A stretch of DNA of 64,000 nt from Phaeosaccion multiseriatum (lineage: Eukaryota; Protista; Ochrophyta, other classes), in NCBI GenBank assembly GCA_965112735.1, contig OZ218954.1:620001-684000 (forward strand). Reading direction: 5' to 3'. Both the position numbers and the translations under genes were made by a program. How positions within the stretch are numbered: position 1 is the stretch's first letter; each line of letters opens with the position of its first letter. The notes beneath the pieces were generated by a model. That model did not search any database, had not been told where the DNA came from, and saw only the letters and a program-made list of their open reading frames with translations. This document shows, piece after piece, positions 30,089 to 46,431 of this stretch.

Positions 30089-33000
30089 TTACCACTTACT
30101 CACAGCTGGCTTTTCACGGGTGGTGGTGCGGGTGCGGTGATTCACGTAGAAGTCCTCTCCGCTGTGGTATCAAAAGAGAGGGAGGGAGGGAGGGAGGGAA
30201 GGAGGGAGGGAGGAAGGAAGGAAGGAAGGAAGGAAGGAGTGAGTTAGGGATGTCATCAAATGCCAAGCGAAGCGTCAGGGGTCGAGTCATGACTGCATGC
30301 ATTAACCTGCTCTTCTCCTCCCTTTGCTTCCACCTTCCTTCATCCTGCCATCCATTCTCCCTCCTATCCACCCACGCACGCACCGACTATCCACGTCCAC
30401 CCTTTACCCACATACACACACACCCATGCACGCACCCACCCACCCACCCCCCCCCCCACTGTCCTGACACCAACCACCAACTCACGCGTTGTCTTTCTTG
30501 ACCTCGATATGCGCTGGCAGCACGTGGGGGTTAATCACGGGCCTCTCCCACGTGGTCTCCTGAGTAATTTCAGTTTCAGTTTCAGTGTCAGGGTCAGGGT
30601 CAGGGTCAGTTTCAGTTTCAGTGTGTTTAGGACCACATACGTACTGTCGTACAAAGCAGCCCAGCGACTGTCAATCAAGAGGCAGATATCAAACAAACGC
30701 CCGCGCTGTGGATGGACAGCTCAACACTCAAAGGCAGGTTCACACATCCGGGTGTGTGCCACTCACTCACTCACTCACTCACTCACCCCATTCGCTCCCT
30801 CCCCCCCCCTCAAGTCCACCTAAAACTCAAACTCACCTGCGTGACGTGATCCACGTAATATATCTTACCCCCTTCCGTCTCTTTGGTCTCAATGTACGGA
30901 GGCAGCCGCGCCGAGGGTGACGTGATGGACTGAATCGGCTGTCTGCTGCCATCGCCAGATGGTGATGAGAGGCCAGAGGAGGCCCCCGGGGCCACGGGCG
31001 CAGGCATCTCCCACGTGGTTTGGTGGGTTTGGTGGTTGACGAAGTAGGGCCTTCCCTCGGGCGTCAGGCGCTTTTCGATATGGGAGGGGAGGTAAGATTC
31101 TTCCGTGGTCAGCGGCACCTGAGGAAGAGGGGGGGGGACGGGAGGGGGGGGGGGCGGGAGGCGGACAGAAAGAGGAGGAGAGGGTTTTGCACGCAATGAG
31201 AGTTGTCTCGCCCTTCCCACACGCACACACACACACACACACATACACACACGCACACACATACACCCACCCAGCCACACACACACACACGCACGCACGC
31301 ACACACAAGCATACACACACACGCACGCACGCACGCACATACACACACACACACATACACACACATACACATACCCAACCACACACACACGCACGCACAC
31401 ACCTTTGTGCGGCTGCGGGAAGCCATCGCGGCTCCTCCAGGGGGGTTCCAAGAAGACACCTGCATCCGTTTCAGTTTCAGTTGAGTTTGTTAGATAGACC
31501 TCACTCACGAATGCAACGACACGCATCAAAATGAGGATTATGCAATATTTCGATAATATCGAATGCTCTGCTTCCGACTCAGCTCTGGATCTCTTGATTT
31601 GTTCGATACGTACACGTCGACATACCGACAAAGTACCGAGGTCGACATAGAGTATCGAGGTCTTCCACAAAACTGAAACTGAAACTCACTTTTGTGTTGT
31701 GATCGAGGTAGTACGGGGTGCCATCAGGCAGGGTCCGTTTCTCCACATGGGATGGCAGCTGGGAAGTTGGTGATACGGCGGCGGCGGGAGGAGGAGGGGG
31801 GGCGGACGGGCTGGGGGGGGCAGCAGCAGCAGTTGGTTCTTCGGCGGCGTTGGCAACGTCGGGTCTCTCCCACGTGGTTGTCTTTTGGAGGGAGGGGGGA
31901 GGAGGAGGGCGAGGAGGGAGGGAGGGGGAGAAGGAGGAGGGGGAGGAGGAGGAGGAGGAGAGGGGAGGAGGCAAATCAAAGCCAGCAATTGATCACTGGC
32001 GGGTACGAACTTCTCTTCCTCGTTGCTCTGCATGGGCGTTGCGTTAACGAGTTGCGCCGTTAACGAGGGCGCCTGTACCACCAACACAACCCCTCAACCA
32101 CCACCCACAACTGGCGCACCACCACCACAACAACTGGCGTATACAGTTATACCACCAACTGTCGTACCTTTGTGCGATGGTTGAGGTAGTAGACCCTCCC
32201 GTCCTGCGTCCGTTTCTCCTCTATGGAGTCCGGGAGAGCTCCTGCACGTCCACTGCCATCCCCACCCTGCTGCTTCTCTTCGCCCTCCTTCTTCGGGGAA
32301 GGTGCCAACGCCGCAGCACCGGCAGCGAGATGGGCGGCGGAAGAAGAGTAGGCAGAGGAAGAGGGTCGGCGAGGGGGAGAGGGGGAAGGGGAGGGAGAGG
32401 GAGAGGGAGAGGGAGAGGGAGAGGTGCTACCGGGGTACTCCCACTGCGTCTTGCGGAGATTGTGCGATACGTAGTAGATCCTGCAGGGGGGGATGGCAGT
32501 GGATGGCAGTGGATGGCAGTGGATGGCGGTGTGACGGGGTGGGTAGGTGAGTGGGTAGGTGAGTGGGTGGATGTGGGTGGGCGGCTGTGGGCGAATCACT
32601 TGCTGCTACGCCATTCTGACTCTTCCCCTGCGTCATCCATCTCTTGCTGACTCATCGCCCCCTCCTCTTCGGTGATTCCTCATATATATATATATATACA
32701 AATAAGTCCATGAACATTCACTCACCGCCCTCCCGAAGTGATGCGCTGCTCCCATCCCGGGGGCAGGTCCTTTTCTTTCTCCTTCATGGCCTGATTGATT
32801 GATTTTGAATGATTGATTTGTTTCAGTTGTCAATTTCGGTGTCAGGAAGAGGCAAGGTCAACACACATCGATGCCATTACAGTGCAGAGAGTGGATGGTG
32901 AATTGGATGGCAGCAGATGGTTTAACTCGATGGTAGTGGATGGTTAATTGGATTGCAGCACATGCTTAATAAGACGGCAGTGGATGGTGAATTGGAAGGC

Positions 33001-33670
33001 AGTAGACGCTCATTGGATGGCAGTGGATGGTGAACTGGATGGCAGCAGACGGTTTGAGCATTGCAATCGAGGAAAGCTCCCTCTTACCAGGCGACTCGCG
33101 ACGACGCTGGGGTGTTCCCAAGAGGTGGTCATGCCGATGTGGTCAATGTAGTACCTGGTGTCAGCCCAAACCCCCCCCCAAACACACACACACACGCACA
33201 CACATACACACATAACACACACACACACACGCACATACACACACGCACACACACACACGCACACACACACGCACATACACACACGCACACACACACACAC
33301 ACACACACATAACACACACACACACACGCACATACACACACACACACACATAACACACACACACACACGAAAGAGAGATGTCAGTGCAGAGGTGTGTCAG
33401 AAGTCAGCAGAACGTACACACATCTACACAAGGAAGAAAAGGCACACACAGAGAGAAGTGTCCTCACCTTCTGCCGCCTTCAGTGTACTTGGCCTCCCAG
33501 CCGGGTGGGAGGTTCTCCAGCTCCAGCACGGGATTCAAAAAGGCCTCCTGCTGTTGAACAGTGACGACGGGGGGGTCCCACTGCGATCGACGACAGCGAG
33601 AGGGGAGGGAAGGAGGGAGAGAGAGGGAGAGGGAGAGAGAGGGAGAGGGAGGGGAGAGAGAGAGAAGGGG

Positions 33671-33705
<35 letters not shown>

Positions 33706-36700
33706 AGGGAGAGAGAGAAGGAGAAGGAGAGAGGAGAAGGAGAGAGAAGGAGAGAGCGAGGTGAGTATCGACATGAGTCTTTGGAAAGCATTAAGCATAG
33801 AGAATGCCCACCCCACCCACCCCTTCCTCACAGGCAGTTACAGTCACAGTTACACAGACAGTTACAGATCACACTTCTCACAGACACAGTTGGTTGTCGT
33901 TTTCTGGCTCGTTCGTTGATATCTAGCAGCCAGCCTCTCCCCCCCCCACCGCCCGCCCTCCCCTCATCTCCCCTCCCCCCTCCCCCTCACTTGCCTGAGT
34001 CGTCCGCGTCTGGTGGTTGACGTAATACACGCGACCGTCCGCCGTGAAATTCTTCTCCCACCCGTCGGGGAGCTGCCCACCCCCTACTTGGCCAGGTCGG
34101 GCCATGGAGCCGGGACCCGTTGGCGCCCCGACATTGACCTGTTGAGGGTGTTGTTAGTGGGAACAGAACACACACACATACATACACAGAGAGAGAGAGA
34201 GAGACAAGAGGGAGGGAGACAGACAGACAAGAGAGAGAGATAGAGACAGACAAGAGAGAGAGAAATAGAGAGATAGAGACAGACAAGAGAGAGAGACAGA
34301 CAGACAAGAGAGAGAGACAAGAGAGAGATAAAGGGAGACAGCCAAGTGAGAGAGAGATAGAGACAGACAGAGAGGCAGGCAGACAAGAGAGAGAGGGAGA
34401 CAGACAAGAGAGAGAGAAGTGATTCAGAGCGAAGCGAGTGGAAGGGGGTGGCGAGCGTTACAAGAATGCAAATCGAATAGATACATGGAGGAATGACCGA
34501 CTGACAAGAAACATGGGAAAGAGGGGATTGGCAGATGGATGGATGGATAGATAGAAAGACAGATTGGTAGGTAGATGGATAGATAGAAAGATACATGGAT
34601 GGATGGATATATAGATAGATACATGGATGGATGGATGGATAGAAAGATAGATAGATAGATAGGTAGATGGATAGATAGATAGATACATGGATGGATGGAT
34701 GGATGGATAGATCGGTGGGTAGATGAGTAGCCAGCCCCCTGTGATGCTCTTGACACCTTCTAACGTTCCCAACCCCCCGCCCCCTCCCCTCACTCACCGA
34801 GAAGAGGTCTCCCACCCCGCCCCCCAAGTTCGCCAAGCCGCCGAAGCCCGGCAACACCTGCCCCATGTGCACCTTCAAGCGAGCGTTACAAAAGAGCGTC
34901 ACAAAAGAGCGTTACAGACCGGGACAGAAAAAACAAACAAACGGGAAAAACGGGTGGGGTATACAGCATCATTGGAGCAACATGATTTCAGAGTCGCAGC
35001 ATCGGAGCAAGTCCCCCTGTTCACATCATGTGGTACTAAGTCAATAAACAGTTCACACCATTTAGATTTTGTATATATATATACTCCCCCGAGCCCCCTC
35101 CCCCATACGCCTCTGACTGATAACGGGTGGATGAAACAAGCATAGGAGAGCAAGTGAGGAGGCTGTAAAAGGCCGCCCGCCACATTGCCCATACACCTCT
35201 ACCCTACCCTGCCCATATGCCTGCCCCATGTGCCCTCTCACCGTTTGCTGTCCCTGTTGGCTACCAAAGGCCGCCACATTGCCTCCAAGCTGTTGCACAA
35301 AGGCCACGCCCTGAGCGTGTAGTACCTCATGGGGGGCAGGGTAGAACTTCACCTAAGTGAGCACGTTGGTGATACGGAGGAGGAGGAGGAGGAGGAGGAG
35401 GAGGAGGAGAGGAGGAGGAGGAGGAGGAGGAGGAGGAAAGGAGGAGGAGGAGGAGGAGGAGGAGGAGGAGGAGGAGGAGGAGGAGGAGGAGGGGACGCCG
35501 GATCACATCACAGGTTGGGTGGAGGGTGTGCGTCCTGACACCCACCCACTGTTCTGACACGCACCCACCGTCCTGACACCCATCCACCCACTGTCCTGAC
35601 ACCCACCCACCCACTGTCCTGACACCCACCCACCCACTGTCCTGACACCCACCCACCCTCTGTCCTGACACCCACCTACCCACTGTCCTGACACCCACCC
35701 ACCCACTGTCCTGACACCCACCCACCCACTGTCCTGACACCCACCCACCCACTGTCCTGACATCCACCCGCCCACTGTCCTGACACCCACCCACCCACTA
35801 TCCTGACACCCACCCATTGACTTACTACCCACCCACCTTGGCGAAGAGGGCGTCTCTCTGCTTCTTGCTAATGTCTGGGAACTCCTCCTCCGTGCTCAGA
35901 GAAAGGCCGTGGGCACTGAAGTCAGTGAAATCAGTAAGAGCACGTGAGCAGGGATGGTCATTAATGGCACAGAGGAGGAGGGTCAATCAGTCAGCCCAGC
36001 AGTCACGAGTAAAGAAGGGAGTCACAAGTCAACAAACCAATGAAGTCAGTGCAAGTGAGAGAGAGAGCAACACACACACACACTCAAGAGAAAGAGAGCA
36101 GTCGGGGCGGGCCATGGCCAGTAAGTCAACGAGAAGCCAGCAAAACTATGTCAATGAGACGAGACGCGCCTGAAGTGGCCGCCCACTCGGAGTGGCAGGA
36201 AACGAGTGGCGTTGGCGGGAAGGTCTTTCACGTCGAAGGCGAAGAGCGGGTCCGTGAGCTGCGCAGTCTGCATGAGTGGACAGTACGCGTCGATGCCCTG
36301 CGTGTGTGTGTGTGTGGGGGGGGGGGGATAAAAGGAGGGGGAGGGGAGAGAAAGCGGGATCGGAGGAGAAGATTTAAAAAACAAGGTAATCTCCTCCTCC
36401 TCCTCCTCCTCCTCCTCCTCCTCCTCCTCCTCCTCCTCCTCCTCCTCCTCCTCCTCTTCGTCCTCTACCCCCTTCACTCACTCACTCACTCACTCACTCA
36501 CTCACTCACTTACTCACTCACTCACTCAGTCACTCACTCACTCAGTCAGTCACTCACTCACTCACTCACTCACTCACTTACTCACTCACTCACTCACTCA
36601 CTCACCTGAACATCCCGAAAGTCAATGTCCTTGGTCTCTCCATGCCCCCCCCCGGCCTTCTTTCTGCACAAGCGAGAGATGCTCGACCACAGTGCATACA

Positions 36701-39700
36701 GAAATACGAACCCTCCTCCGAACACAAACAGCGCGCCAGCCAGCACCTGACAGCAGTTGGGTGAGTGGGTGTGAGTGTGGGTGTGAGTGGGTGGGTGTAG
36801 GTGGGTGGGTAGGTGGGTGGGTGTGTAGGTGAGTGGGGGTGTGTAGGTGAGTGGGGGTGGGCGGATGTGTGGGTGGATGTGAATGGGCGATAAGAGTGTG
36901 GGTAGGGCATGAGTGTGGATGTGGGTGGGTGGGTTTGGGTGTGGGTGTGGGTGTGAGTGTGTGGGTGGGTGTGGGTGGGTGGGTGTGTGTGTGTGGGTGT
37001 GTGTGTGTAAGAGAGTCGGAGTGGGCGGATGTGTGGGTGGGTGGGTGGGTGTGGGTGCGTGGGGGTGGGTATATGTGATTGGGCGATGAGAGTGTGGGTA
37101 GGGGATGAGTGGGTGAGTGAGTGAGTTAATGAGGCCAAAAGGGAGGGAGGGAGGGAGAGGGCTGAAACTCAAACTCAAACTCAAGTGGCTCAGAGGGTGC
37201 CCATGCCTTCCTCTCCCTCCCTCCCTTCCTCCGTCCCTCCCTCCCTTCTCCTAACCTCGTAGGTGGTAACAAGTGAGCTCTGCGAGTTGGTCCACCGCCC
37301 GTCGTCGCCAGTTGGCGATAAAACCGCCTCTGCCGCACTCAGCGTAGCCCCCTGGGAGCAGTAGAAGAACGAGCAGTCCGCCTGCGTGTGTGTTTGCGTG
37401 TGCGTGCGTGTGTGTGTGTGTAGGGGGGGTGGGTGGGTCGGTGTGTGGGTGACAGTTCGTATGAGGTGGTACCAGGAAGGGATTGAAATTGACTGACAAA
37501 CTGACTGACTGAATGAAGGACTGACTGACTGACTGACTGGGTGACTGACTGACTGAAGGACTGACTGACTGACTGATTCACTATCCACCTAAAACCAATT
37601 GACCACTGCCCTGACTGCCTGACTCACAAATGACAAACACTGACCTTGACTGCTCGGCTCTCGTAGGGCCAATTGGCAAAGAAGACCCGCGTGATGAGGA
37701 GGTGGACCCACACAGAAACAATGAGGTAGAATCTGTTGGTGCCATTTGGGGGGGGGGGGAGGGGGGGATGGAAGGCAGTGGATGGGGTGAGGGAGGAGGG
37801 AGAAGAGAAGACAAGCAAGCGGGGTGAGGGAAGGGGTGGATGGCAGTGGATGGGAGAGGGCCACCCACCTGGACTGCTGCGCCAAGCTCTCGTCAAAGTA
37901 CGGAGCTCTCCTCCACAGGCGGAACAGACTGTATTTGTCCACCCAGTACGTCGTCACCTGGGCATGGCAAGTAGAGGCATATGGGACATCATGTTAGAGG
38001 CATATGGAGGGGAATGTAGAGGCAAATGGTGATCTGGGCATGCCAAGTTGAGGCTTATGGAGCAATGTAGGAGCATACGGGGGGAGGGGGGGTTGGGTAT
38101 GTAGAGGCATATGGGTGTGTGTGGTGACCTGGGCATGCTGGATAGAGGCATATGAGACATTTAAGAGGAATATGGTGACCGGGGCATGCTAGATAGAGGC
38201 ATATGAGACATCATGTTAGAGGTATATGGTGACCTGGGCATGCCAAGTAGAGGCGTACGGGGGCATGTAGGTTGTGTCCACGCGTTGAGCTATATGTTCC
38301 ACAATCTTGCGTTCCACCTTTTGCCATGTCTTGAGCTTGAGTATAACCTAACGAACTCAACCTCAAACTCACCATGGCGGCCGTGGTGACGAAGAGTCCC
38401 GTGGGTACGAGGGCGGAGTAGAAGAGGCCCACAAAGATGGTCTTGACCATGTCTGTGTAACGCTCTGCCAGGTTCCAAATGGCGCCCTGTGAGTGAGTGG
38501 ATGTGGAGTGGGTGAGGATGGGGGTAGTGGGTGTCGAGGGAGGGAGGCAGGAAAGGAGGGAGGGAGGGAGGGAGAGAAGGAGGGAAGGGAGAAGGAGAGG
38601 GAGGGAGTGAGGGGAGAAGGACAGGGAGGGAAGGAGGGACGGAAAGGCGTATGGTCAGGAGCACGCACACACACAGGAGTGACGTACAGTTCGATCGTTT
38701 GTTTGTCTTGTGTTGGTGGCGCAGGGGGGTGCACTCACTCACTCACTCACTGACTCACCCACTCACTTAGTCACTCACACACTGACCACTGCCTCTCCCC
38801 CTTCCTCACTCCCTCACTCACTCACTCCCTGTCCTGACACCCACTCACCTGGAAGAATACGTTCATTTCTGCCTGAGTTTTTGCCTGAGTGAGGCAGAGT
38901 GCCACGAAGTCCACAAGAGACATCAGCAAGCAAAGCAAGCAAAGCACGCGAAGCACATGAAAGACAATTAAAAACCCCACAGCCCAGCAAAGGCAACGGC
39001 AAGGGCAAAGACAAAAAAGCAGGTAAGCCAGGTAGGTACGGCAAGGAGCCGGGCAGTTTCAGCTTGACTTTCAGATTATGGACCTCCCATCCAGTGAGGT
39101 CGAAATGATTGATGAATGCGAGAGAGATGGACCCGTTCACTGCCATCATCCACTCCATCCACCCACTGCCGTCCATCCATCCCGCCTATCTACTGCCATC
39201 CATCATCACCTGCGGGGCGAAGAACTTCCTCATTCCCCAATCGTAAAGGTTGAGCACACGGAGCACAGGGGTGGTGAAGGCATCCGCAATGAGGATGGAC
39301 ATGACCTGAAGAGATGGCAGTGGATGGAAGAAATGGCAATGGATGGAAAGAATGGTAGTGGATGGGAGGGATGGCAATGGATGATAGGTGAGCACACGGA
39401 GCACAGGGGTGGTGAAGGCATCCGCAATGAGGATGGACATGACCTGAAGAGATGGCAGTGGATGGAAGAAATGGCAATGGATGGAAAGAATGGTAGTGGA
39501 TGGGAGGGATGGCAATGGATGATAGGTGAGCACACGGAGCACAGGGGTGGTGAAGGCATCCGCAATGAGGATGGACATGACCTGAAGAGATGGAAGTGGA
39601 TGGCAGTGAACGGGAGGGATGGCAATGGATGGAAAGAATGGCAGTGGATGGTAGGTGAGTACAGGGCAGTGAATTGGTGTGAGAAGGGGCGGATGACAGT

Positions 39701-42700
39701 GGATGGGAGCCTTATGAAGGATGGACAGGACCCCAAGAGATGGCAGTGGATGGCAGTGAATGGGCGTGACTACATGGGGGAGGTAAATGGGATGGCAGTG
39801 GACGGTTCTGGATGTGAGGTTGGGGGGGTAGTATACGTGGGAGGTGGGTGGATGGCAGTGGATGGCAGTGCACCTACACACCTGATTGAGGGTTGCGGGG
39901 TCCAGCGTGTCAACATACTTGGTACCAATGTAAATGAGCAGCGCAGAGTTGATCATTCGAGCCACTGTGAGCTTGAGCATCATGCTGCTCTGTGTGTCTG
40001 TACGGGACTTGTGAGACTCCAGCATCAACGTCACGTTCTATTGTGGCCACACGTAGGCACACATAGGCACACACACGCACACACACACACACACACACGC
40101 ATGCACATACACGCACGCACACACACGCACACACACACGGGGAGGGAGGGGGGGTATATAGATGGATGGATACACAGAGACAGAGGGGAGAGAGAGAGAG
40201 GAGAGAAAGGTTAGGGCTAAGGTCTCGTACGCACACTGATCCACACAAACAAAAAGATACACAAGCACGCGGCAAAAGTCCCCCCCCTAAACCCCTTTAT
40301 ACTTCCCTTCTTATCCCCCCCCTTCCACCTCCCCCACCTCCTCCTCCTCCTCCTCCTCTCCGACCTCACCTTAATCACAATGGGAAGGCCAGCGTTAACG
40401 AGCGAGATGAACACCGCGGCTCCGGCGTTGGAGTCGTTGGGGATGGCGAGAGTCACAAAGAAGGACGCGAGAAGAAGGCAGCCGCAGACTGGGCCGGGGA
40501 GGGATGGCAGTGGATGGATGGGGTGGGATGGGATGGCAGTGGATGGAGTACGGTACAGAACAAAGGCCAAGAGGAGAAGAGTGAGAGAGGCAGAGAGAGA
40601 GAGGCAGGAGAGAGGTAGAGAGAGAGAGAGGCAGAGAGAGAGGCAGGGAGAGGAGAATCGGCAAGTGAGTGGGGGCAAGCCGCACTAGCGCTGAGGGAGT
40701 GAGACATACACAGGCACACAGAAAAGAGGCAACGAGGGAGAACGGTGCAGAGAGAGAGAAAAAAAGCGAGCAAGGGAGCGAGAGAAGGGAGAGAAAGGGA
40801 CAGAGAAAGAGAGAGACCCACGGAAAGACACACAGAGATAGAGTGTGCATACGTGCGCGTGTTGGTTGTACACACCGAAGAGGCTGGCTAAGAACCACAT
40901 GAGGCGGTGCGTCTTGGAGAGATGGAGGTTCTCCCACACCATGGAGTTGGGCTCCTGCGCCTCTGTGATGTTCAGCACCTGTTGGTGATTCGGGGGGTGG
41001 TGATTCAATCCAAATGGCATGGCACACGACGGATGGCAGTGGATGGACGAAGGCGAATAGTTTTTTGAGTGAGTGAGTTTACTCGAGGTCGAGAGAGAGA
41101 GATAGACCGCCGGGGGGGGGTGGAAGAGAGGGAGAGAAAGAGAGGGGAAGAGAGAGATGGAGAGATGGAGAGGGTGAGAGAGGGGGAGAGAGAGAGGGAG
41201 AGAGCGAGAGGGAGAGAGAGAAAGAGAGAGAGGGAGAGAGAGAGCCCTTCTCACCTTGCCCTCGAACACGCTTTTGGTGTTGCTCTCGCGATGCTTGTTG
41301 AACTTCTCCTCCAGAATGCCTGGCAGGGAGGGAGGGAGGCGGGGAGGGAGGGAGGGAGGGAAGGAGGGTGGGAGGGAGGGAGGGAGGGAGGGAGGGAGGG
41401 ACGGAGGGATGGATGGAGGGAGGGAGGGAGGGAGCAAGGAAGGAAGGAAGGGAGGCAGGGGGTAATGAAGGAAGGTATCTTGGTGGGCCCCGTCTCAGGC
41501 AGGATTGAGGCAAAGCAAAGGTAAGACCTTCAATTCGTACAAAAAAAGGCACAGAGGCAGGCAGGCAGGCAGACAGGTCGACATACACACAGACAGACAG
41601 ACAGACACACAGATAGACAGACAGACAGACAGACAGGTAGGTAGGTTCGGACCTGACACCCATCCGCCCTTCAATCTCTGAGGCAGCGGCGCTAGAAGAC
41701 CTCCCTGTCCTGACACCCATTACTCTGTCCTGACACCCATTACTCTGTCCTGACACCCGTTACTCTGTCCTGACACCCATTACTCTGTCCTGACACCCAT
41801 TACTGTCCTGACACCCATTACTCTGTCCTGACACCCATTACTCTGTCCTGACACCCACCCGTCTCGCAGTCTCTGATGCAGCGGCGCTGAGACACCTCCT
41901 TGTTGAAGGTGATGCACACACGCCTGGGGGAGTAGTCCTGTGTTTTCAGGCCCTGGGGATGGCAGTGGATGGGAGGGGGGATCGGAGGGGGGATGGGAGG
42001 GGGATGGCAGTGGATGGGAGAGGACGGCAGTTTATGGGGAATGATGTGATAGAGGATGGCAGTTGATGGAGGTTGCGGGATGCTACAGCTGGCGACGGAG
42101 AGTGGGGTGGCCGCGGATGGGAGAGGATGGCAGTGGATGGTATATGGGGGGGGGGGGGTCGGGGAGGGGGGAGAACGCTACAAGGGAAACGCACGTAGCG
42201 TAACGTTTACGTACTACACACGCACGTACGTACTGCTTACGTAATGCTACCGTACGTACCACGATCCTGGCCTCGACGACCTTCAAGGCCCCCTCCAGAT
42301 ACTCCACATTTTCAAAGTAACCGAAGGGCTGAAGCCTTCGCTTCCACATTGGCATGAGAGCTTGCGTTTCGCTCACTTGCAGGAACCGCTCCACACGGCT
42401 CTTCTTCGCCTTCGCGACCTGGAGTGGGTGTCAGGACCGTGGGTGGGTGGGTGTCAGGACAGTAGGTGGGTGGGTGTCGGGACAGTGGGTGGGTGTCAGG
42501 ACAGTGAGTGGGTGTCAGGACAGTGGAGTGTCAGGACAGTGAGTGGGTGGGTGTCAGGACAGTGGGTGGGTGGTGTCAGGACAGTGGGTGGGTGCGTGTC
42601 AGGACAGTGGGTGGTGGCAGGACAGTGGGTATCGGGAAAAATGGTGTCAGGACCGTGAGTAACCCCACCCACCTTCTCTGCCTCCCTGTCCGTCACGGTC

Positions 42701-45700
42701 CGCAGTGACACGGCCTCTCCAGGGCGTGGAGCCAGAGTACCGTCACGGCTGCCGAAGGAGGGAGGGAGGGAGGGAGCGAGGGAGGGAGGGAGGGAGGGAG
42801 GGAGGGCGGGAGGGAGGGAGGGAGAGAGAGAGAGCGGGAGGGAGGGAGAGCGGGAGAGAAGGGGGGGGTGGTAGGAGAGGGAGAGAGCGAGAGGGGACAT
42901 GAGAGAGGAAAGAGAGAGCAAGAGAGATACAGAGAGAGAGAGGAGAGAGAGAGAAGAGGGTCAGTGGGACACACAATGAGGGAGGGAGGGAGAGACAGTG
43001 GGACACACAAACAAGGGAGGACGAGAGAGGTACACACATACAGAGAGACACACAGAGCAAGGGAGAGCGAGAAAGACGTGCGGGAGAGGGTCACCCCACT
43101 ACGGCTGTGAGAAACCAACAATTAAGTCAGTGAGACACCCACCCTACCCATATACCTGGCCTTGGCTCGGTTGAGGAACGCCTTCATGCTGATGAGCTTG
43201 TGCTCGATCACTCTCTTACGGGCAAGGGCCTAAGAAGGCAAAACATGCAGGGGCATGCGGGAGGGTAGGGAAATAGAAGCATATGGGAGAGAATTGGAAG
43301 CATATGGGAGAGAATTAGAGGATCACTCGCTTACGGGCAAGGGCCTAACAAGGCAATTTGCAGGGGCATACGGGAGGGAAGGGAAGGGAATTAGAAGCAT
43401 ATGGGAGAGAATTAGGGCACACGGTGAACCAGAGGCCTCTTGCCGCCCCTCCCCCCCGCCCTCCCCAGGCCACGCGAATGCACGCACGCACACACGCACG
43501 CACGCACTTTGATCAACTCTCCGTTGTTCAGCGCGATGGTCACAAACACGATTTCACCTGGGATGGCAGTGGATGGGATGGTGGTGGATGGGATGGTAGT
43601 GGATGGGATGGGAGTGGATGGAAGTGGCCGTGAACGGTTACAGATAAAAATGGTGTCAGGACAGAGGGTAGGTGGGTGCTGGGGAGGAGGGGGGTGGGGC
43701 GAGGGACGTCGGCTGCGATTGAGCAAGCAAGGAAAGCAGAAAGGCAAATGTAGTGAAAGAGTGGATGGATGGATGGATGGATGGATGGCAGTGGACGGAT
43801 GGCAGTGGATGGCTCACGCAAACGTCCTATCGTAACCCCCCGAAACGGAACCATTGACGGAACATACCAAACTGCTCGAAGTGCTTCTTGTACTTGTCGG
43901 GGTCAATAATGTCGACGGGGGGGTTGTGAATGGTCACAGAGTAATCCTGGGGGGTCTGAGGGTGGGTGGGTGTCAGGACAGAGAGTGGGTGGGCGTCAGG
44001 ACAGAGGGTGGGCGGGTGTCAGGACAGAGGGTGGGTGGGTGTCAGGACAGGGGGTGGGTGGGTGGGTGGGTATGAGTGGGTGGGTGGTGGGTTGTGTTGG
44101 TTGGTGGGGAGACAAGAGGAGAAGAGAGGAGAGGAGAGAAGGAAACGCTGGGCCATGACCCTAACCCTGACCCCAAGGCTTCGCGCCACACGTAGACACG
44201 CACACACAAACACCCACACGCACACAAATACCTCTTAATGTAGATACATACTACCACTATGAAGCCCAAACAATAATACCCAAACACGAGGAGAGAAGGT
44301 ATGTCCATATGACCCTATTGTAAGGAGAGACACCTCCTTCTTGTACAATGTACCTGCTGCGCCAAGTCGATGGCCTCAACGGCGACGCTCTCCGCCTTTC
44401 GAGCTGTGAAGATGAAGCCGAGCAGGATCACGCTGACAAAGATGTCTGTTTTGAGGGATGGCAGTGGATGGGGATGACAGCGTTTTCATTTTACTAAGTA
44501 CATACTATTATTCAAATACCCCTATAGCCCCCCCCCCCGATGCGCTCAATGTGTCCCACACATGCTCTACATACACGTGTATAGACCATCCCCGCCCATC
44601 CACAAACACACACACACACACGCCAACCCCACCTACCGCAGAGACAAGAACGAACAACATAGACAGACTTAAGCACCCCTAACGTACAGACGCCCTCCCC
44701 CCCCCCCAACGCACCCACCTGGGATGCCGTTCTTCTTCATCGACAAATCGTCCCGCGTCGCTCCTACCACCGTGCCCTGGGGATAAGATTCAGTTTCAGT
44801 TTCAGGTGCTGAGATTAAGTTTCAGTTTCAGTTTCAGGTGTTGTACCCACGGGATCGGAATAGATAGATACATGGACGGTGTGGAAACGCGTCGGTTTCC
44901 CCTCCGTCTCCCTCTCCCTCCCTCCCTCACTCCGTCCGTCCGCCCCTCTTTCCCTCCCTCCCTCCCTCCGTCCGTCCCTCCCTCCCCAACCTGGATGAGC
45001 GTGTCCGTGTCCTCGGGATTGAACCCCGTGTTATACGCTATGGACGCAAGGTAGATGACCCCACAAAACAGCGAGAGAGCCCCTAAAAACACAAGCTGAC
45101 GAAAGTAGAGGGCAATGCCAATGCCGAACTCGTCAAGCGTTTTGATGCCACTCGACCACGTGTGGTATGGTTCCGCGACCTGGTGTCAGGACAGTGGGTA
45201 GATGGGTGTCAGGACAGTGGATGGGTGGGTGTCAGGACAGTGGGTAGATGGGTGTCAGGACAGTGGGTAGGTGGGTGTCAGGAGAGTGGGCGGGTGAGTA
45301 TGAGGACAGTAAGTGAGTGGTGTCAGGACAGTAAGTGAGTGTCAGGACAGTACGCTTCCACCTCATACCCACACCCATACGCTTCCACCTCATACCCACG
45401 CTCCTTCCCTCCCTCCCTCCCCTTCCCTCCTCTCCCCTCCCCCCCTCTCCTCTCCTCTCCCCTCCCTTCCCTTCCCTTCCCTTCCCCTCCCCTACTCCCC
45501 TCTCCTCCCCTCCACCCCCCTCCCTCCCCTCTCCCTTCCCTCCCCATGCCCTACTCCGTACTCCCCTTCCCTACCCACTTACGTTTCCAGCCGAGTCCCT
45601 CTTCTCTCCAGGCCTTGCCAAGCGGTATTGCGTGACGTGAGTGGACATTCCCTCTACACCATCTGGGATCCTATGGGGACGATTGTCACGCTGAGAGAGA

Positions 45701-45703
45701 GAT

Positions 45704-45758
<55 letters not shown>

Positions 45759-46431
45759 AAGGGAAAGAGGGGGTGGAGGGAGAGAGGGGAAAGAGGGGGT
45801 GGAGGGAGAGAGAGAAATAAATGTAGGGCACACGGGCAGAGCGATGGAAGGGAGATTTTGGGTGGGCAGCTGGAAAGGAGGTTCTCCTCTCTCGTTTGGT
45901 ACGTCATGTACTGGCCCGAGTGCGCTCTGCTTCCCTGCCTCCTGTGTAGGCTTGGCTCAGGATTGGTTCTGGTTCTTGCATGTGAAATGTGTGTGTGTGT
46001 TTTCTTCTCTCTTTGTCTCATCTCTCCACCCCTCTCTCCCTCCCCGACCCTCTCTGTCCCTCCCTCACCATGAACTGCTCCGCTTGCTCAATCTCGGGCG
46101 GATGGTAGCCCGGCGGTGGGGGCTCATCGTCCGGCGCACCATCCACCCCCCCGCGCGGACTCACTGGAGGGGGAGGTAGATCCTCCTCCCCGGCCTGCAC
46201 CCCATGGTATTGATGACCGCTGTGACTCTTGCTGTGACTCCGGCCGCGGGAGGTAGAGGCCGTCGGACCTGAGTGGCGCTGGTTCAGTTGGACGTTCATG
46301 AATGAGCCTCTTTGCGATCCATAGAACCCACCATCTGCCGCGGAGGAGGAAGGCATGCCTCGCGAACGAGGAGCGGGCGTTTCCACTTCCCCGTCATTGT
46401 CCTCCGGCTCTCCCTGAGAGTGGTGGGACAT
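30089..46431 (-). CDS. OSCA/TMEM63(CSC1)/TMC-like multi-pass channel with a C-terminal array of eight WW domains
   Basis: Channel motifs [15 protein letters not shown] (45179-44991), [13 protein letters not shown] (~43950), [13 protein letters not shown] (~40950), [21 protein letters not shown] (~38480), [14 protein letters not shown] (~37950). In-phase linker exons 36297-36170, 35915-35837, 35352-35242, 34873-34797 lead into WW-coding exons 34138-30089 with no stop codon found. Confidence 0.75.
35530..35815. repeat. Intronic ~23-bp minisatellite (ctgtcctgacacccacccaccca)n, member of a dispersed TGTCCTGACAC family
   Basis: About 12 units. Related arrays at 20545-20605, 41705-41855, 42430-42650, 43970-44050, 45184-45350, 57270-57385, 61755-61835. 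Confidence 0.9.
39209..39600 (-). repeat. 138-bp tandem triplication of a splice acceptor plus exon start ([18 protein letters not shown])
   Basis: gagcacacggagcacaggggtggtgaaggcatccgcaatgaggatggacatgacctgaagagatgg begins at 39252, 39390 and 39528. Confidence 0.95.

Follow-up and report, generated by a model that had tools for sequence, protein, structure and literature searches.

A single intron-rich gene of Phaeosaccion multiseriatum probably encodes an OSCA/TMEM63-like membrane protein with a tail of eight WW domains

The locus described here raises the question of whether a channel-like membrane domain and a row of WW domains, placed one after the other on the minus strand of a stretch of the Phaeosaccion multiseriatum genome (positions 620,001 to 684,000 of contig OZ218954.1; these 64,000 nucleotides are called the window, and all coordinates below are counted within it), belong to one protein or to two. 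We found that the minus strand from 46431 to 30089 can be read as one model of 35 exons (E1-E35) and 34 introns, comprising approximately 1396 codons, which runs from an ATG at 46431 to a stop codon at 30091-30089 and contains no internal stops. All acceptors of this model are AG and all donors are GT, with the exception of two GC donors at 36169 and 33994, and the phases were checked exon by exon. The original prediction, made from the sequence alone, had claimed a spliced frame leading without a stop from the last transmembrane (TM) helices into the WW domains, and the 35-exon model is indeed open throughout. Judging from the sequence, we put the probability at about 0.85 that this is a single intron-rich gene encoding one membrane protein, composed of an OSCA/TMEM63-like domain and a poly-WW tail. 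The main basis for the fusion is the gene structure together with the proteins of relatives, rather than transcripts of this alga.

The predicted protein consists of four parts, i.e., (i) a cytosolic N-terminus without a membrane helix, bearing polyproline and PPxY motifs; (ii) a domain of 10 helices in which an RRM-like cytosolic insert separates TM2 from TM3, and which is a distant OSCA/TMEM63 relative devoid of TM0; (iii) a conserved cytosolic segment (E22-E24) following the last helix and continued by a Gly/Gln-rich linker; and (iv) eight tandem WW domains, of which three are canonical, Nedd4/YAP-like, and the following five atypical.

The DNA of the window is GC-rich and eukaryotic, with many short exons and with introns rich in microsatellites and low-complexity repeats. 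A home-made gene finder, based on codon usage and position weight matrices, served only as a source of candidate exons and was not counted as evidence for the fusion; it drew one gene through the junction in every parse, over-called short exons and over-extended them under a homology bonus. The landmark peptides named in the original prediction were located exactly, but its exon outline missed five exons, E2 (45690-45583), E4 (44776-44719), E16 (38884-38849), E19 (37732-37645) and E20 (37381-37256), all of which were exposed by tblastn searches with the relatives. Two exons, E25 (34872-34798) and E32 (31459-31403), are treated as optional. The gene ends seven codons beyond the last WW domain, and the stop at 30089-30091 was favoured because the homologues also end shortly after their last WW domain. 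A consensus GTGAGT donor is located at 30104-30096, seven codons before this stop, and additional 3' exons are possible. For this genome, the manual 35-exon model, drawn across microsatellite-filled introns and including two GC-AG introns, holds up.

The relatives were searched for with a full HMMER search seeded by E3 alone, i.e., by 63 residues of the TM1 region, lying far from the WW part, and 44 proteins were matched. Eight of the ten long matches carry C-terminal WW domains along with weak matches to PHM7_cyt, RSN1_7TM or Anoctamin, and four more relatives with C-terminal WW domains, three of them brown-algal, were recorded. Proteins of Pylaiella littoralis and Scytosiphon promiscuus and one EukProt protein, each with four WW domains, came from a word search seeded by one relative (P0009). 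The family is present in databases only as "WW domain-containing protein" (UniRef A0A7S1XXG6 of Phaeomonas parva) or as unnamed products, and its members include CAM9375034.1 of Chrysoparadoxa australica. Two relatives, P0005 (A0A7S1XXG6) and P0024, are complete MMETSP transcript open reading frames (ORFs). Furthermore, P0039 is an uninterrupted 3129-nt ORF of a Tara metagenome scaffold (L001:3001-6129), P0054 is an uninterrupted 3105-nt ORF of an NCBI genome contig (L003:2001-5105), and P0010 spans a 2993-nt contig. As these ORFs come from transcripts or are uninterrupted in genomic DNA, the protein with both channel and WW domains is read from one frame in several organisms, and no splicing model is needed there.

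When the relatives were compared with the window by tblastn, a colinear chain over all exons was obtained, with E-values down to 6e-15 and 40-75% identity in the conserved exons. From the N-terminal segment through the TM domain and the conserved C-terminal segment to the WW tail, the window gene is thus colinear (tblastn and blastp) with an ochrophyte family of OSCA-like proteins ending in WW domains, and the same order of PY motif, YRLAR.GE segment, 10-TM domain, GIDxY...LFxxVKYY segment, linker and WW domains is found in its unnamed members. The differences are that some relatives are intronless, whereas the window gene has 34 introns, and that the relatives have one to four WW domains (four in brown algae, three in Chrysoparadoxa and two in Phaeomonas), whereas the window gene has eight, the atypical terminal WW domain having gone from one to five copies. 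That relatives found from the TM1 exon alone end in WW domains argues for one protein with a channel domain and a poly-WW tail, as originally proposed, and the survey of domain architectures that had been suggested as a check gave the same picture in proteins of brown algae, Chrysoparadoxa and Phaeomonas. The architecture had also been called unusual, and this holds only in part: a literature search found no paper on WW domains fused to OSCA, TMEM63, DUF221 or CSC1, but the fusion is a trait of an ochrophyte family and only the copy number of eight is special. One brown-algal model, the 815-aa P0058 of Scytosiphon promiscuus, has no WW domains and ends about 30 residues past the VRYYPGP motif that matches E24; its annotation may be cut short, the gene itself bearing WW domains, or it may be a genuine paralogue without them.

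The junction between the two halves is made up of E22-E26. E22 (36170-36297), encoding the conserved C-terminal cytosolic segment, starts after a clean CAG, has coding-like codons and ends at a GC donor, with the intron beginning at 36169. It is followed by two linker exons, E23 (35837-35915), which is entered in phase 2 and ends AAG/GTGGGT (slashes mark splice sites) in phase 0, and E24 (35242-35352), which follows TTAG, begins with VKFYPAPHE and loses its coding signal at a GTGAGA donor. The Gly-rich linker exon E25 (34798-34872) is in phase 0 at both ends and has a GC content at third codon positions (GC3) of 0.96 and a GTGAGT donor; it has no homologue support and is considered optional because the E24-E26 stretch is not conserved in the homologues. 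E26 (33995-34138) comprises linker and most of WW1 (Pfam WW, 48.1 bits; nearest PDB sequences Itch and NEDD4L), and its GC donor opens the intron at 33994.

Exon-wise blastp showed that in the Pylaiella protein P0055 the counterparts of these exons are arranged in the same way. E22 matches residues 707-748 (67% identity, E 6.5e-17), E23 residues 750-775 (58% identity) and E24 residues 776-786 (64% identity; further matches in P0002, 696-733, and P0054, 828-851), while the WW1 exon E26 (61% identity) matches farther downstream in the same protein. The one residue separating the E22 and E23 matches corresponds to the split codon. The order and contiguity of E22, E23 and E24 hold also in P0002, P0009, P0024 and the intronless P0054, and this contiguity confirms both the weak GC-AG join and the join of E23 to E24. 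The originally proposed passage from ...RDALFAK to VKFYPAPHE... is therefore real. E23 is coding-like only downstream of its TTCAG acceptor, lacks an ATG in frame and can be entered only in phase 2, and the E22 donor that gives phase 2 with an AG/G exon side is CAG/GCGCGT, the GC version of a GTGCGT donor used elsewhere in the gene. Splicing of E22 from a canonical GT donor at 36186 (phase 0) was rejected, since E23 has no acceptor that would open it in phase 0 and since the homologues run through "...GG.Y/.A..LS".

For the assessment of coding potential, the linker exons were kept out of the training set of the codon table. Each of E22-E25 received a coding score (0.23-0.63 bits per codon, with GC3 at 0.59-0.96), and the sequence past each linker donor, including the 58-codon read-through after E24, scores as non-coding. 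An ACTAAC branch site and a CAG acceptor precede the WW1 exon, whose first base (34138) lies ahead of the ATG at 34105; this gives it the appearance of an internal exon and not of a first one. Its donor, CAG/GCAAGT, is a consensus GC donor, and the next exon restores the WDPP end of the WW domain. Both GC donors, CAG/GCGCGT and CAG/GCAAGT, are thus present exactly where they had been placed. The part of the E24-E25 intron between 35064 and 34873 is non-repetitive, AT-richer and non-coding, unlike the microsatellite-filled introns elsewhere, and might be the site of a regulatory element or of an alternative 3' end.

The number of WW domains, eight according to the original prediction, was reproduced, as eight units were counted and every WW exon matches Pfam WW (PF00397, cutoff 26.9 bits). 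The best scores are those of WW1 (48.1 bits, 34072-33995) and WW6 (43.7 bits, 31091-31002), while the remaining units, split by introns, give 16-25 bits per half. E27 (33468-33580; Pfam WW, tblastn) carries the WDPP end of WW1 and the first half of WW2, E28 (33088-33154; Pfam WW E 3e-4) the second half of WW2, and E29 (32726-32790; tblastn with P0002, gene model) the first half of WW3. E30 (32168-32480), an open frame with Pfam WW matches at both ends, contains the second half of WW3, a Ser/Pro-rich spacer and the first part of WW4, and E31 (31690-31881; Pfam WW, tblastn) contains the end of WW4, a spacer and the first part of WW5. The optional E32 (31403-31459), taken from a gene-finder parse and having its donor inside a GT microsatellite, would supply the end of WW5 (VSSWNPP). 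The complete WW6 and the first part of WW7 are encoded by E33 (30837-31118; Pfam WW 43.7 bits; nearest PDB sequences NEDD4L and Itch), the end of WW7 and the first part of WW8 by E34 (30486-30559; gene model, peptide locations), and the rest of WW8 with the stop codon by E35 (30089-30161; Pfam WW E 7e-5), in which the second Trp is replaced by Arg.

WW1-WW3 are canonical (LPxGWE...W..P), while WW4-WW8 are of the LPxx[I/V]E type, the first Trp being replaced by Ile, or by Val in WW5, and WW8 having also the second Trp replaced by Arg. Brown-algal orthologues possess three canonical WW domains and one terminal domain of the LPxHIE type, and the last unit of Chrysoparadoxa is similar. From this brown-algal order it follows that the window gene keeps the ancestral arrangement, with the terminal atypical unit amplified to five. 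The introns split WW2, WW3 and WW8 after GG, before R/x-YY (phase 2), and WW4, WW5 and WW7 after NH.TK or H.TQ (phase 0), while WW6 is intronless; the two recurrent positions suggest at least two rounds of unit duplication. The nearest solved sequences to WW1 and WW6 are those of Itch, NEDD4L, WWP1 and YAP, and PY motifs (PPxY or LPxY) are known ligands of WW domains of this class (PMC8509885).

The membrane part had been described as OSCA/TMC-like, and its family was examined mainly through the homologues. A word search with E14 gave no match, and an Atlas look-alike search with the same exon gave only weak leads (RSN1_7TM and Anoctamin clusters, score 0.88). A profile of 11 relatives (alignment A1) matched the TMEM63A/B and OSCA3.1 chains in PDB with E-values of 2.8e-5 to 0.02, the only other match being one RRM chain at a borderline E of 0.053. 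PHM7_cyt (PF14703, cutoff 27 bits) is exceeded by P0027 (36 bits), P0066 (33), P0056 (29.1) and P0057 (27.9), and at E up to 0.1 it matches nine of the 11 A1 members; E6-E11 of the window align to this region of the homologues. The fold was tested on the homologue P0005 rather than on the window protein, using an AlphaFold2 (AF2) model of its residues 60-830 (pLDDT 70.8, pTM 0.72). In the Foldseek comparison of this model with PDB, the top 35 matches were all OSCA/TMEM63 (E 4.7e-12 to 4e-7), with alignments of about 600-750 columns and a TM-score, normalized by the target, of 0.44-0.56. TMEM16 and TMC matches were at E of about 1e-3 and a TM-score of 0.25-0.3, with TMC-1 at rank 44 (E 2.2e-3).

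On the modelled fold, the assignment of the membrane part to a distant, TM0-less relative of OSCA/TMEM63 is strongly supported. Of the two halves of the former description, the OSCA/TMEM63-like one is upheld by fold and profile; a TMC-like identity was ruled out, since OSCA/TMEM63 structures are far ahead in Foldseek and the homologues have no TMC Pfam match. HMMER comparison of single exons and of homologues with the domains listed in the original prediction gave a similarly divided outcome, with WW above its cutoff, but RSN1_7TM and Anoctamin below threshold and TMC absent. The Pfam domains of OSCA/TMEM63 (CSC1-like) proteins are RSN1_TM, PHM7_cyt and RSN1_7TM. According to the model, the likeness to the solved OSCA/TMEM63 structures (8xw0, 8wg4, 6mgv, 8ehw) extends over almost the whole membrane part and includes the RRM-like domain between TM2 and TM3. 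The identity, however, is only about 12-13%, TM0 is missing, so that there are 10 helices instead of 11 and a cytosolic instead of an extracellular N-terminus, and the window protein additionally has an N-terminal PY motif, an extra conserved C-terminal segment and the WW array. With TMEM16 (anoctamin) and TMC proteins it shares the superfamily fold, the 10 helices and the cytosolic termini, and some relatives show sub-threshold Anoctamin matches, but those proteins have no RRM-like insert and their fold matches are far weaker.

The N-terminal region is encoded by E1 and E2. E1 (46069-46431; first ATG of the ORF, donor GTGAGG) comprises the start codon and a hydrophilic, cytosolic N-terminus of 121 codons, the tail of which aligns to P0009 and P0039. 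It contains a PPxY motif (PPGY, 46105-46116), located just ahead of a conserved helix and the YRLAR.GE segment, and [P/L]PxY occurs at the homologous position in most family members. E2 (45583-45690), with splice sites AG and GTAAGT, was identified by tblastn to P0009, P0024 and P0039 and carries the conserved segment with YRLARPGE. The maximum 19-residue hydropathy of E1 and E2 is below 0, the N-termini of the homologues are hydrophilic, and the first helix in the AF2 models is TM1. Since the N-terminal exons are hydrophilic and the models open with TM1, a TM0 is lacking and both termini should be cytosolic. Besides PPxY, E1 carries the polyproline motif LPPPPVSP (46156-46179), which is found also in the brown-algal homologues P0055-P0058, where it is nearly identical (a stretch of 12 residues), and thus represents a second conserved, proline-rich, ligand-like motif.

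Several observations weigh against the reading of one channel-WW protein or against parts of it. RNA-labelled public runs compared with 33050-38550 yielded only short low-complexity repeat matches and not a single splice joint, and the candidate runs had about 5% of sampled words in common with the locus. At the junction, the GCGCGT donor of E22 is a weak GC donor, the linker from E24 to E26 is not conserved, and read-through stops are present after E21, E22 and E24, which makes WW-less isoforms possible. As for the membrane part, single channel exons have no Pfam match and no meaningful PDB match, and RSN1_7TM (PF02714, gathering threshold 28.7 bits) is not reached even by the best homologues (P0004, 28.5 bits; P0066, 28.1; others 18-24), single exons of the window giving no match at all. 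The channel activity and the WW ligands are putative. In the full-length AF2 model of P0005, which is a low-power test, the PPxY region has a pLDDT below 50 and no docking onto the WW domains is predicted. Finally, PPxY is shared by WW-less family members and hence does not single out the fused form, and three WW-bearing proteins with a single WW domain have no PY motif; the motif therefore characterizes the family and does not correlate with the fusion, and PPxY as a marker of WW-bearing forms alone was discarded. The matches of the RNA runs were confined to 37500-37576 and 33939-33992, i.e., to GACT-type and similar repeats which occur also in contigs of unrelated organisms.

Some of these observations would be accommodated by a locus producing the fused form plus WW-less isoforms, the latter through retained introns or alternative poly(A) sites at E22 or E24, with the WW tail being regulated. 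This alternative is compatible with the fusion and draws on the weak GC donor of E22, on the stop five codons past it, on the open read-through from E24 to 35065 and on the existence of WW-less family members. We regard it as rather unlikely, as the read-through tails have non-coding codon statistics.

Two adjacent genes on the same strand are much less probable still. The first would be a WW-less channel gene, closed by one of the read-through stops that follow E21 (near 36597), E22 (36154) and E24 (35065), and the second a WW-only gene starting from an ATG in E25 (34866) or in E26 (34105). In-frame ATGs do lie just upstream of WW1, the AT-richer, non-coding 35064-34873 could be an untranslated region (UTR) or intergenic, the brown-algal P0058 stops soon after its E24-matching motif, and the RNA-labelled runs matched only repeats of the locus. 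Nevertheless, the segments orthologous to E22, E23, E24 and WW1 are in one ORF in transcripts and intronless genes of the relatives, the coding statistics end at splice donors and not at read-through stops, and the ATG of the WW1 exon is preceded by a textbook branch site and acceptor. Moreover, only about 200 bp would be left for a 3' UTR, a promoter and a 5' UTR. Least probable of all is a decaying, partly pseudogenic locus with the WW array as a recent repeat expansion, for although WW8 has lost its second Trp, five WW domains their first, and a 99%-identical 138-bp tandem repeat copies the start of E15, all 35 exons are in frame with zero stops, family-invariant residues are visible in the window exons, and the conservation of LPxHIE-type WW domains in brown algae points to a functional variant.

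If the one-gene reading is correct, the membrane part would act as a tension- or osmotically gated cation channel or as a lipid scramblase, like its structural relatives, and the WW array would serve in the cytosol as a platform on which PPxY/LPxY ligands dock. The first candidate ligand is the PPxY conserved at the N-terminus, whether that of the same protein, of a partner subunit or of a paralogue devoid of WW domains. Its binding would lead to clustering, tethering or regulation of the channel, or would protect the PY motif from Nedd4/Rsp5-type ubiquitin ligases. Self-interaction between WW domains and PPxY is plausible from the sequence features. More speculative, and in our opinion doubtful, is a self-contained PY-WW circuit, in which the N-terminal PPxY of one subunit, or of a WW-less paralogue, would be bound by the C-terminal WW array of that subunit or of one next to it, latching or clustering channels and competing with ubiquitin ligases; if true, the channel would carry both the motif and its reader, and the five atypical WW copies would tune the valency of the clusters.

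In animals and fungi, the same PY-WW logic acts in trans through Nedd4/Rsp5 ligases, an example being ENaC, a PY-motif channel regulated by the HECT ligase Nedd4-2. The window protein resembles such systems in being channel-like and in having a cytosolic PPxY and WW domains of the Nedd4/Itch/YAP type, but it differs in that the channel protein carries the WW domains covalently, within its own chain, and has no C2 or HECT domain. No C2 or HECT Pfam match was found in the scanned exons or in the homologues, and nothing catalytic was detected in the tail. OSCA/TMEM63 proteins constitute the largest family of eukaryotic mechanosensitive channels, and to our knowledge little has been reported on their intracellular tethering and regulation. 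Brown algae and their relatives have a TM0-less branch of the OSCA/TMEM63 fold equipped with a C-terminal WW reader and a matching N-terminal PY motif, which may offer a concrete, testable model of how force sensors are coupled to scaffolds or associate with one another in ochrophytes, multicellular and unicellular alike.

The membrane domain itself is encoded by E3-E21. E3 (44991-45179; tblastn E 1.8e-15 to P0002), the query of the search with 44 hits, contains TM1 with a motif of 14 residues and has a maximum hydropathy of 2.34. E4 (44719-44776; P0002, 65% identity) encodes the TM1-TM2 loop and E5 (44354-44445; P0009, 68% identity) TM2. The RRM-like cytosolic domain starts in E6 (43868-43955; P0009, 61% identity, E 2.5e-9) and continues through E7 (43508-43557; P0004, 75% identity), E8 (43143-43229), a helix with a less certain donor, taken from a gene-finder parse and fitting the homologue consensus, E9 (42263-42418; P0002, E 1.9e-6), E10 (41859-41952; P0009, 65% identity, E 8e-8), which encodes a beta strand, and E11 (41255-41319), placed by a gene-finder parse and splice sites, with weak homology. 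E12 (40876-40978; P0004, 56% identity; fitted phase-1 donor) contains the end of this domain and the start of TM3, and it is followed by E13 (40370-40488; P0004, 44% identity; acceptor found) in the TM3/TM4 region and by E14 (39882-40037; P0009 and P0004, E about 4e-10) in the TM4/TM5 region.

Further downstream, E16 (38849-38884; P0002, acceptor found) is a short exon of 12 residues, E17 (38373-38486; P0004, 74% identity, E 6e-15) encodes the most conserved TM segment, E18 (37869-37957; P0002, 67% identity) a conserved segment of 11 residues, and E19 (37645-37732; P0009, 60% identity) a TM segment ending FFANWPY. The loop encoded by E20 (37256-37381; tblastn with P0005) has conserved cysteines that are invariant in alignments A1 and A2. 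The last TM helix lies in E21 (36606-36746; hydropathy 2.18), which ends in phase 0 at CAG/GTGAGT and would meet a stop three codons on if the intron were retained. E15 (39210-39305; P0004, 59% identity), of the TM5/TM6 region, forms the third copy in a tandem repeat of 138 bp (39251-39603; 2.6 copies, 99% identical), the unit of which copies the E15 acceptor and the first 54 nt of the exon. The repeat yields three identical CTTCAG/GTCATG acceptors, and in-frame splicing could add the two pseudo-exon copies lying upstream as inserts of 48 nt.

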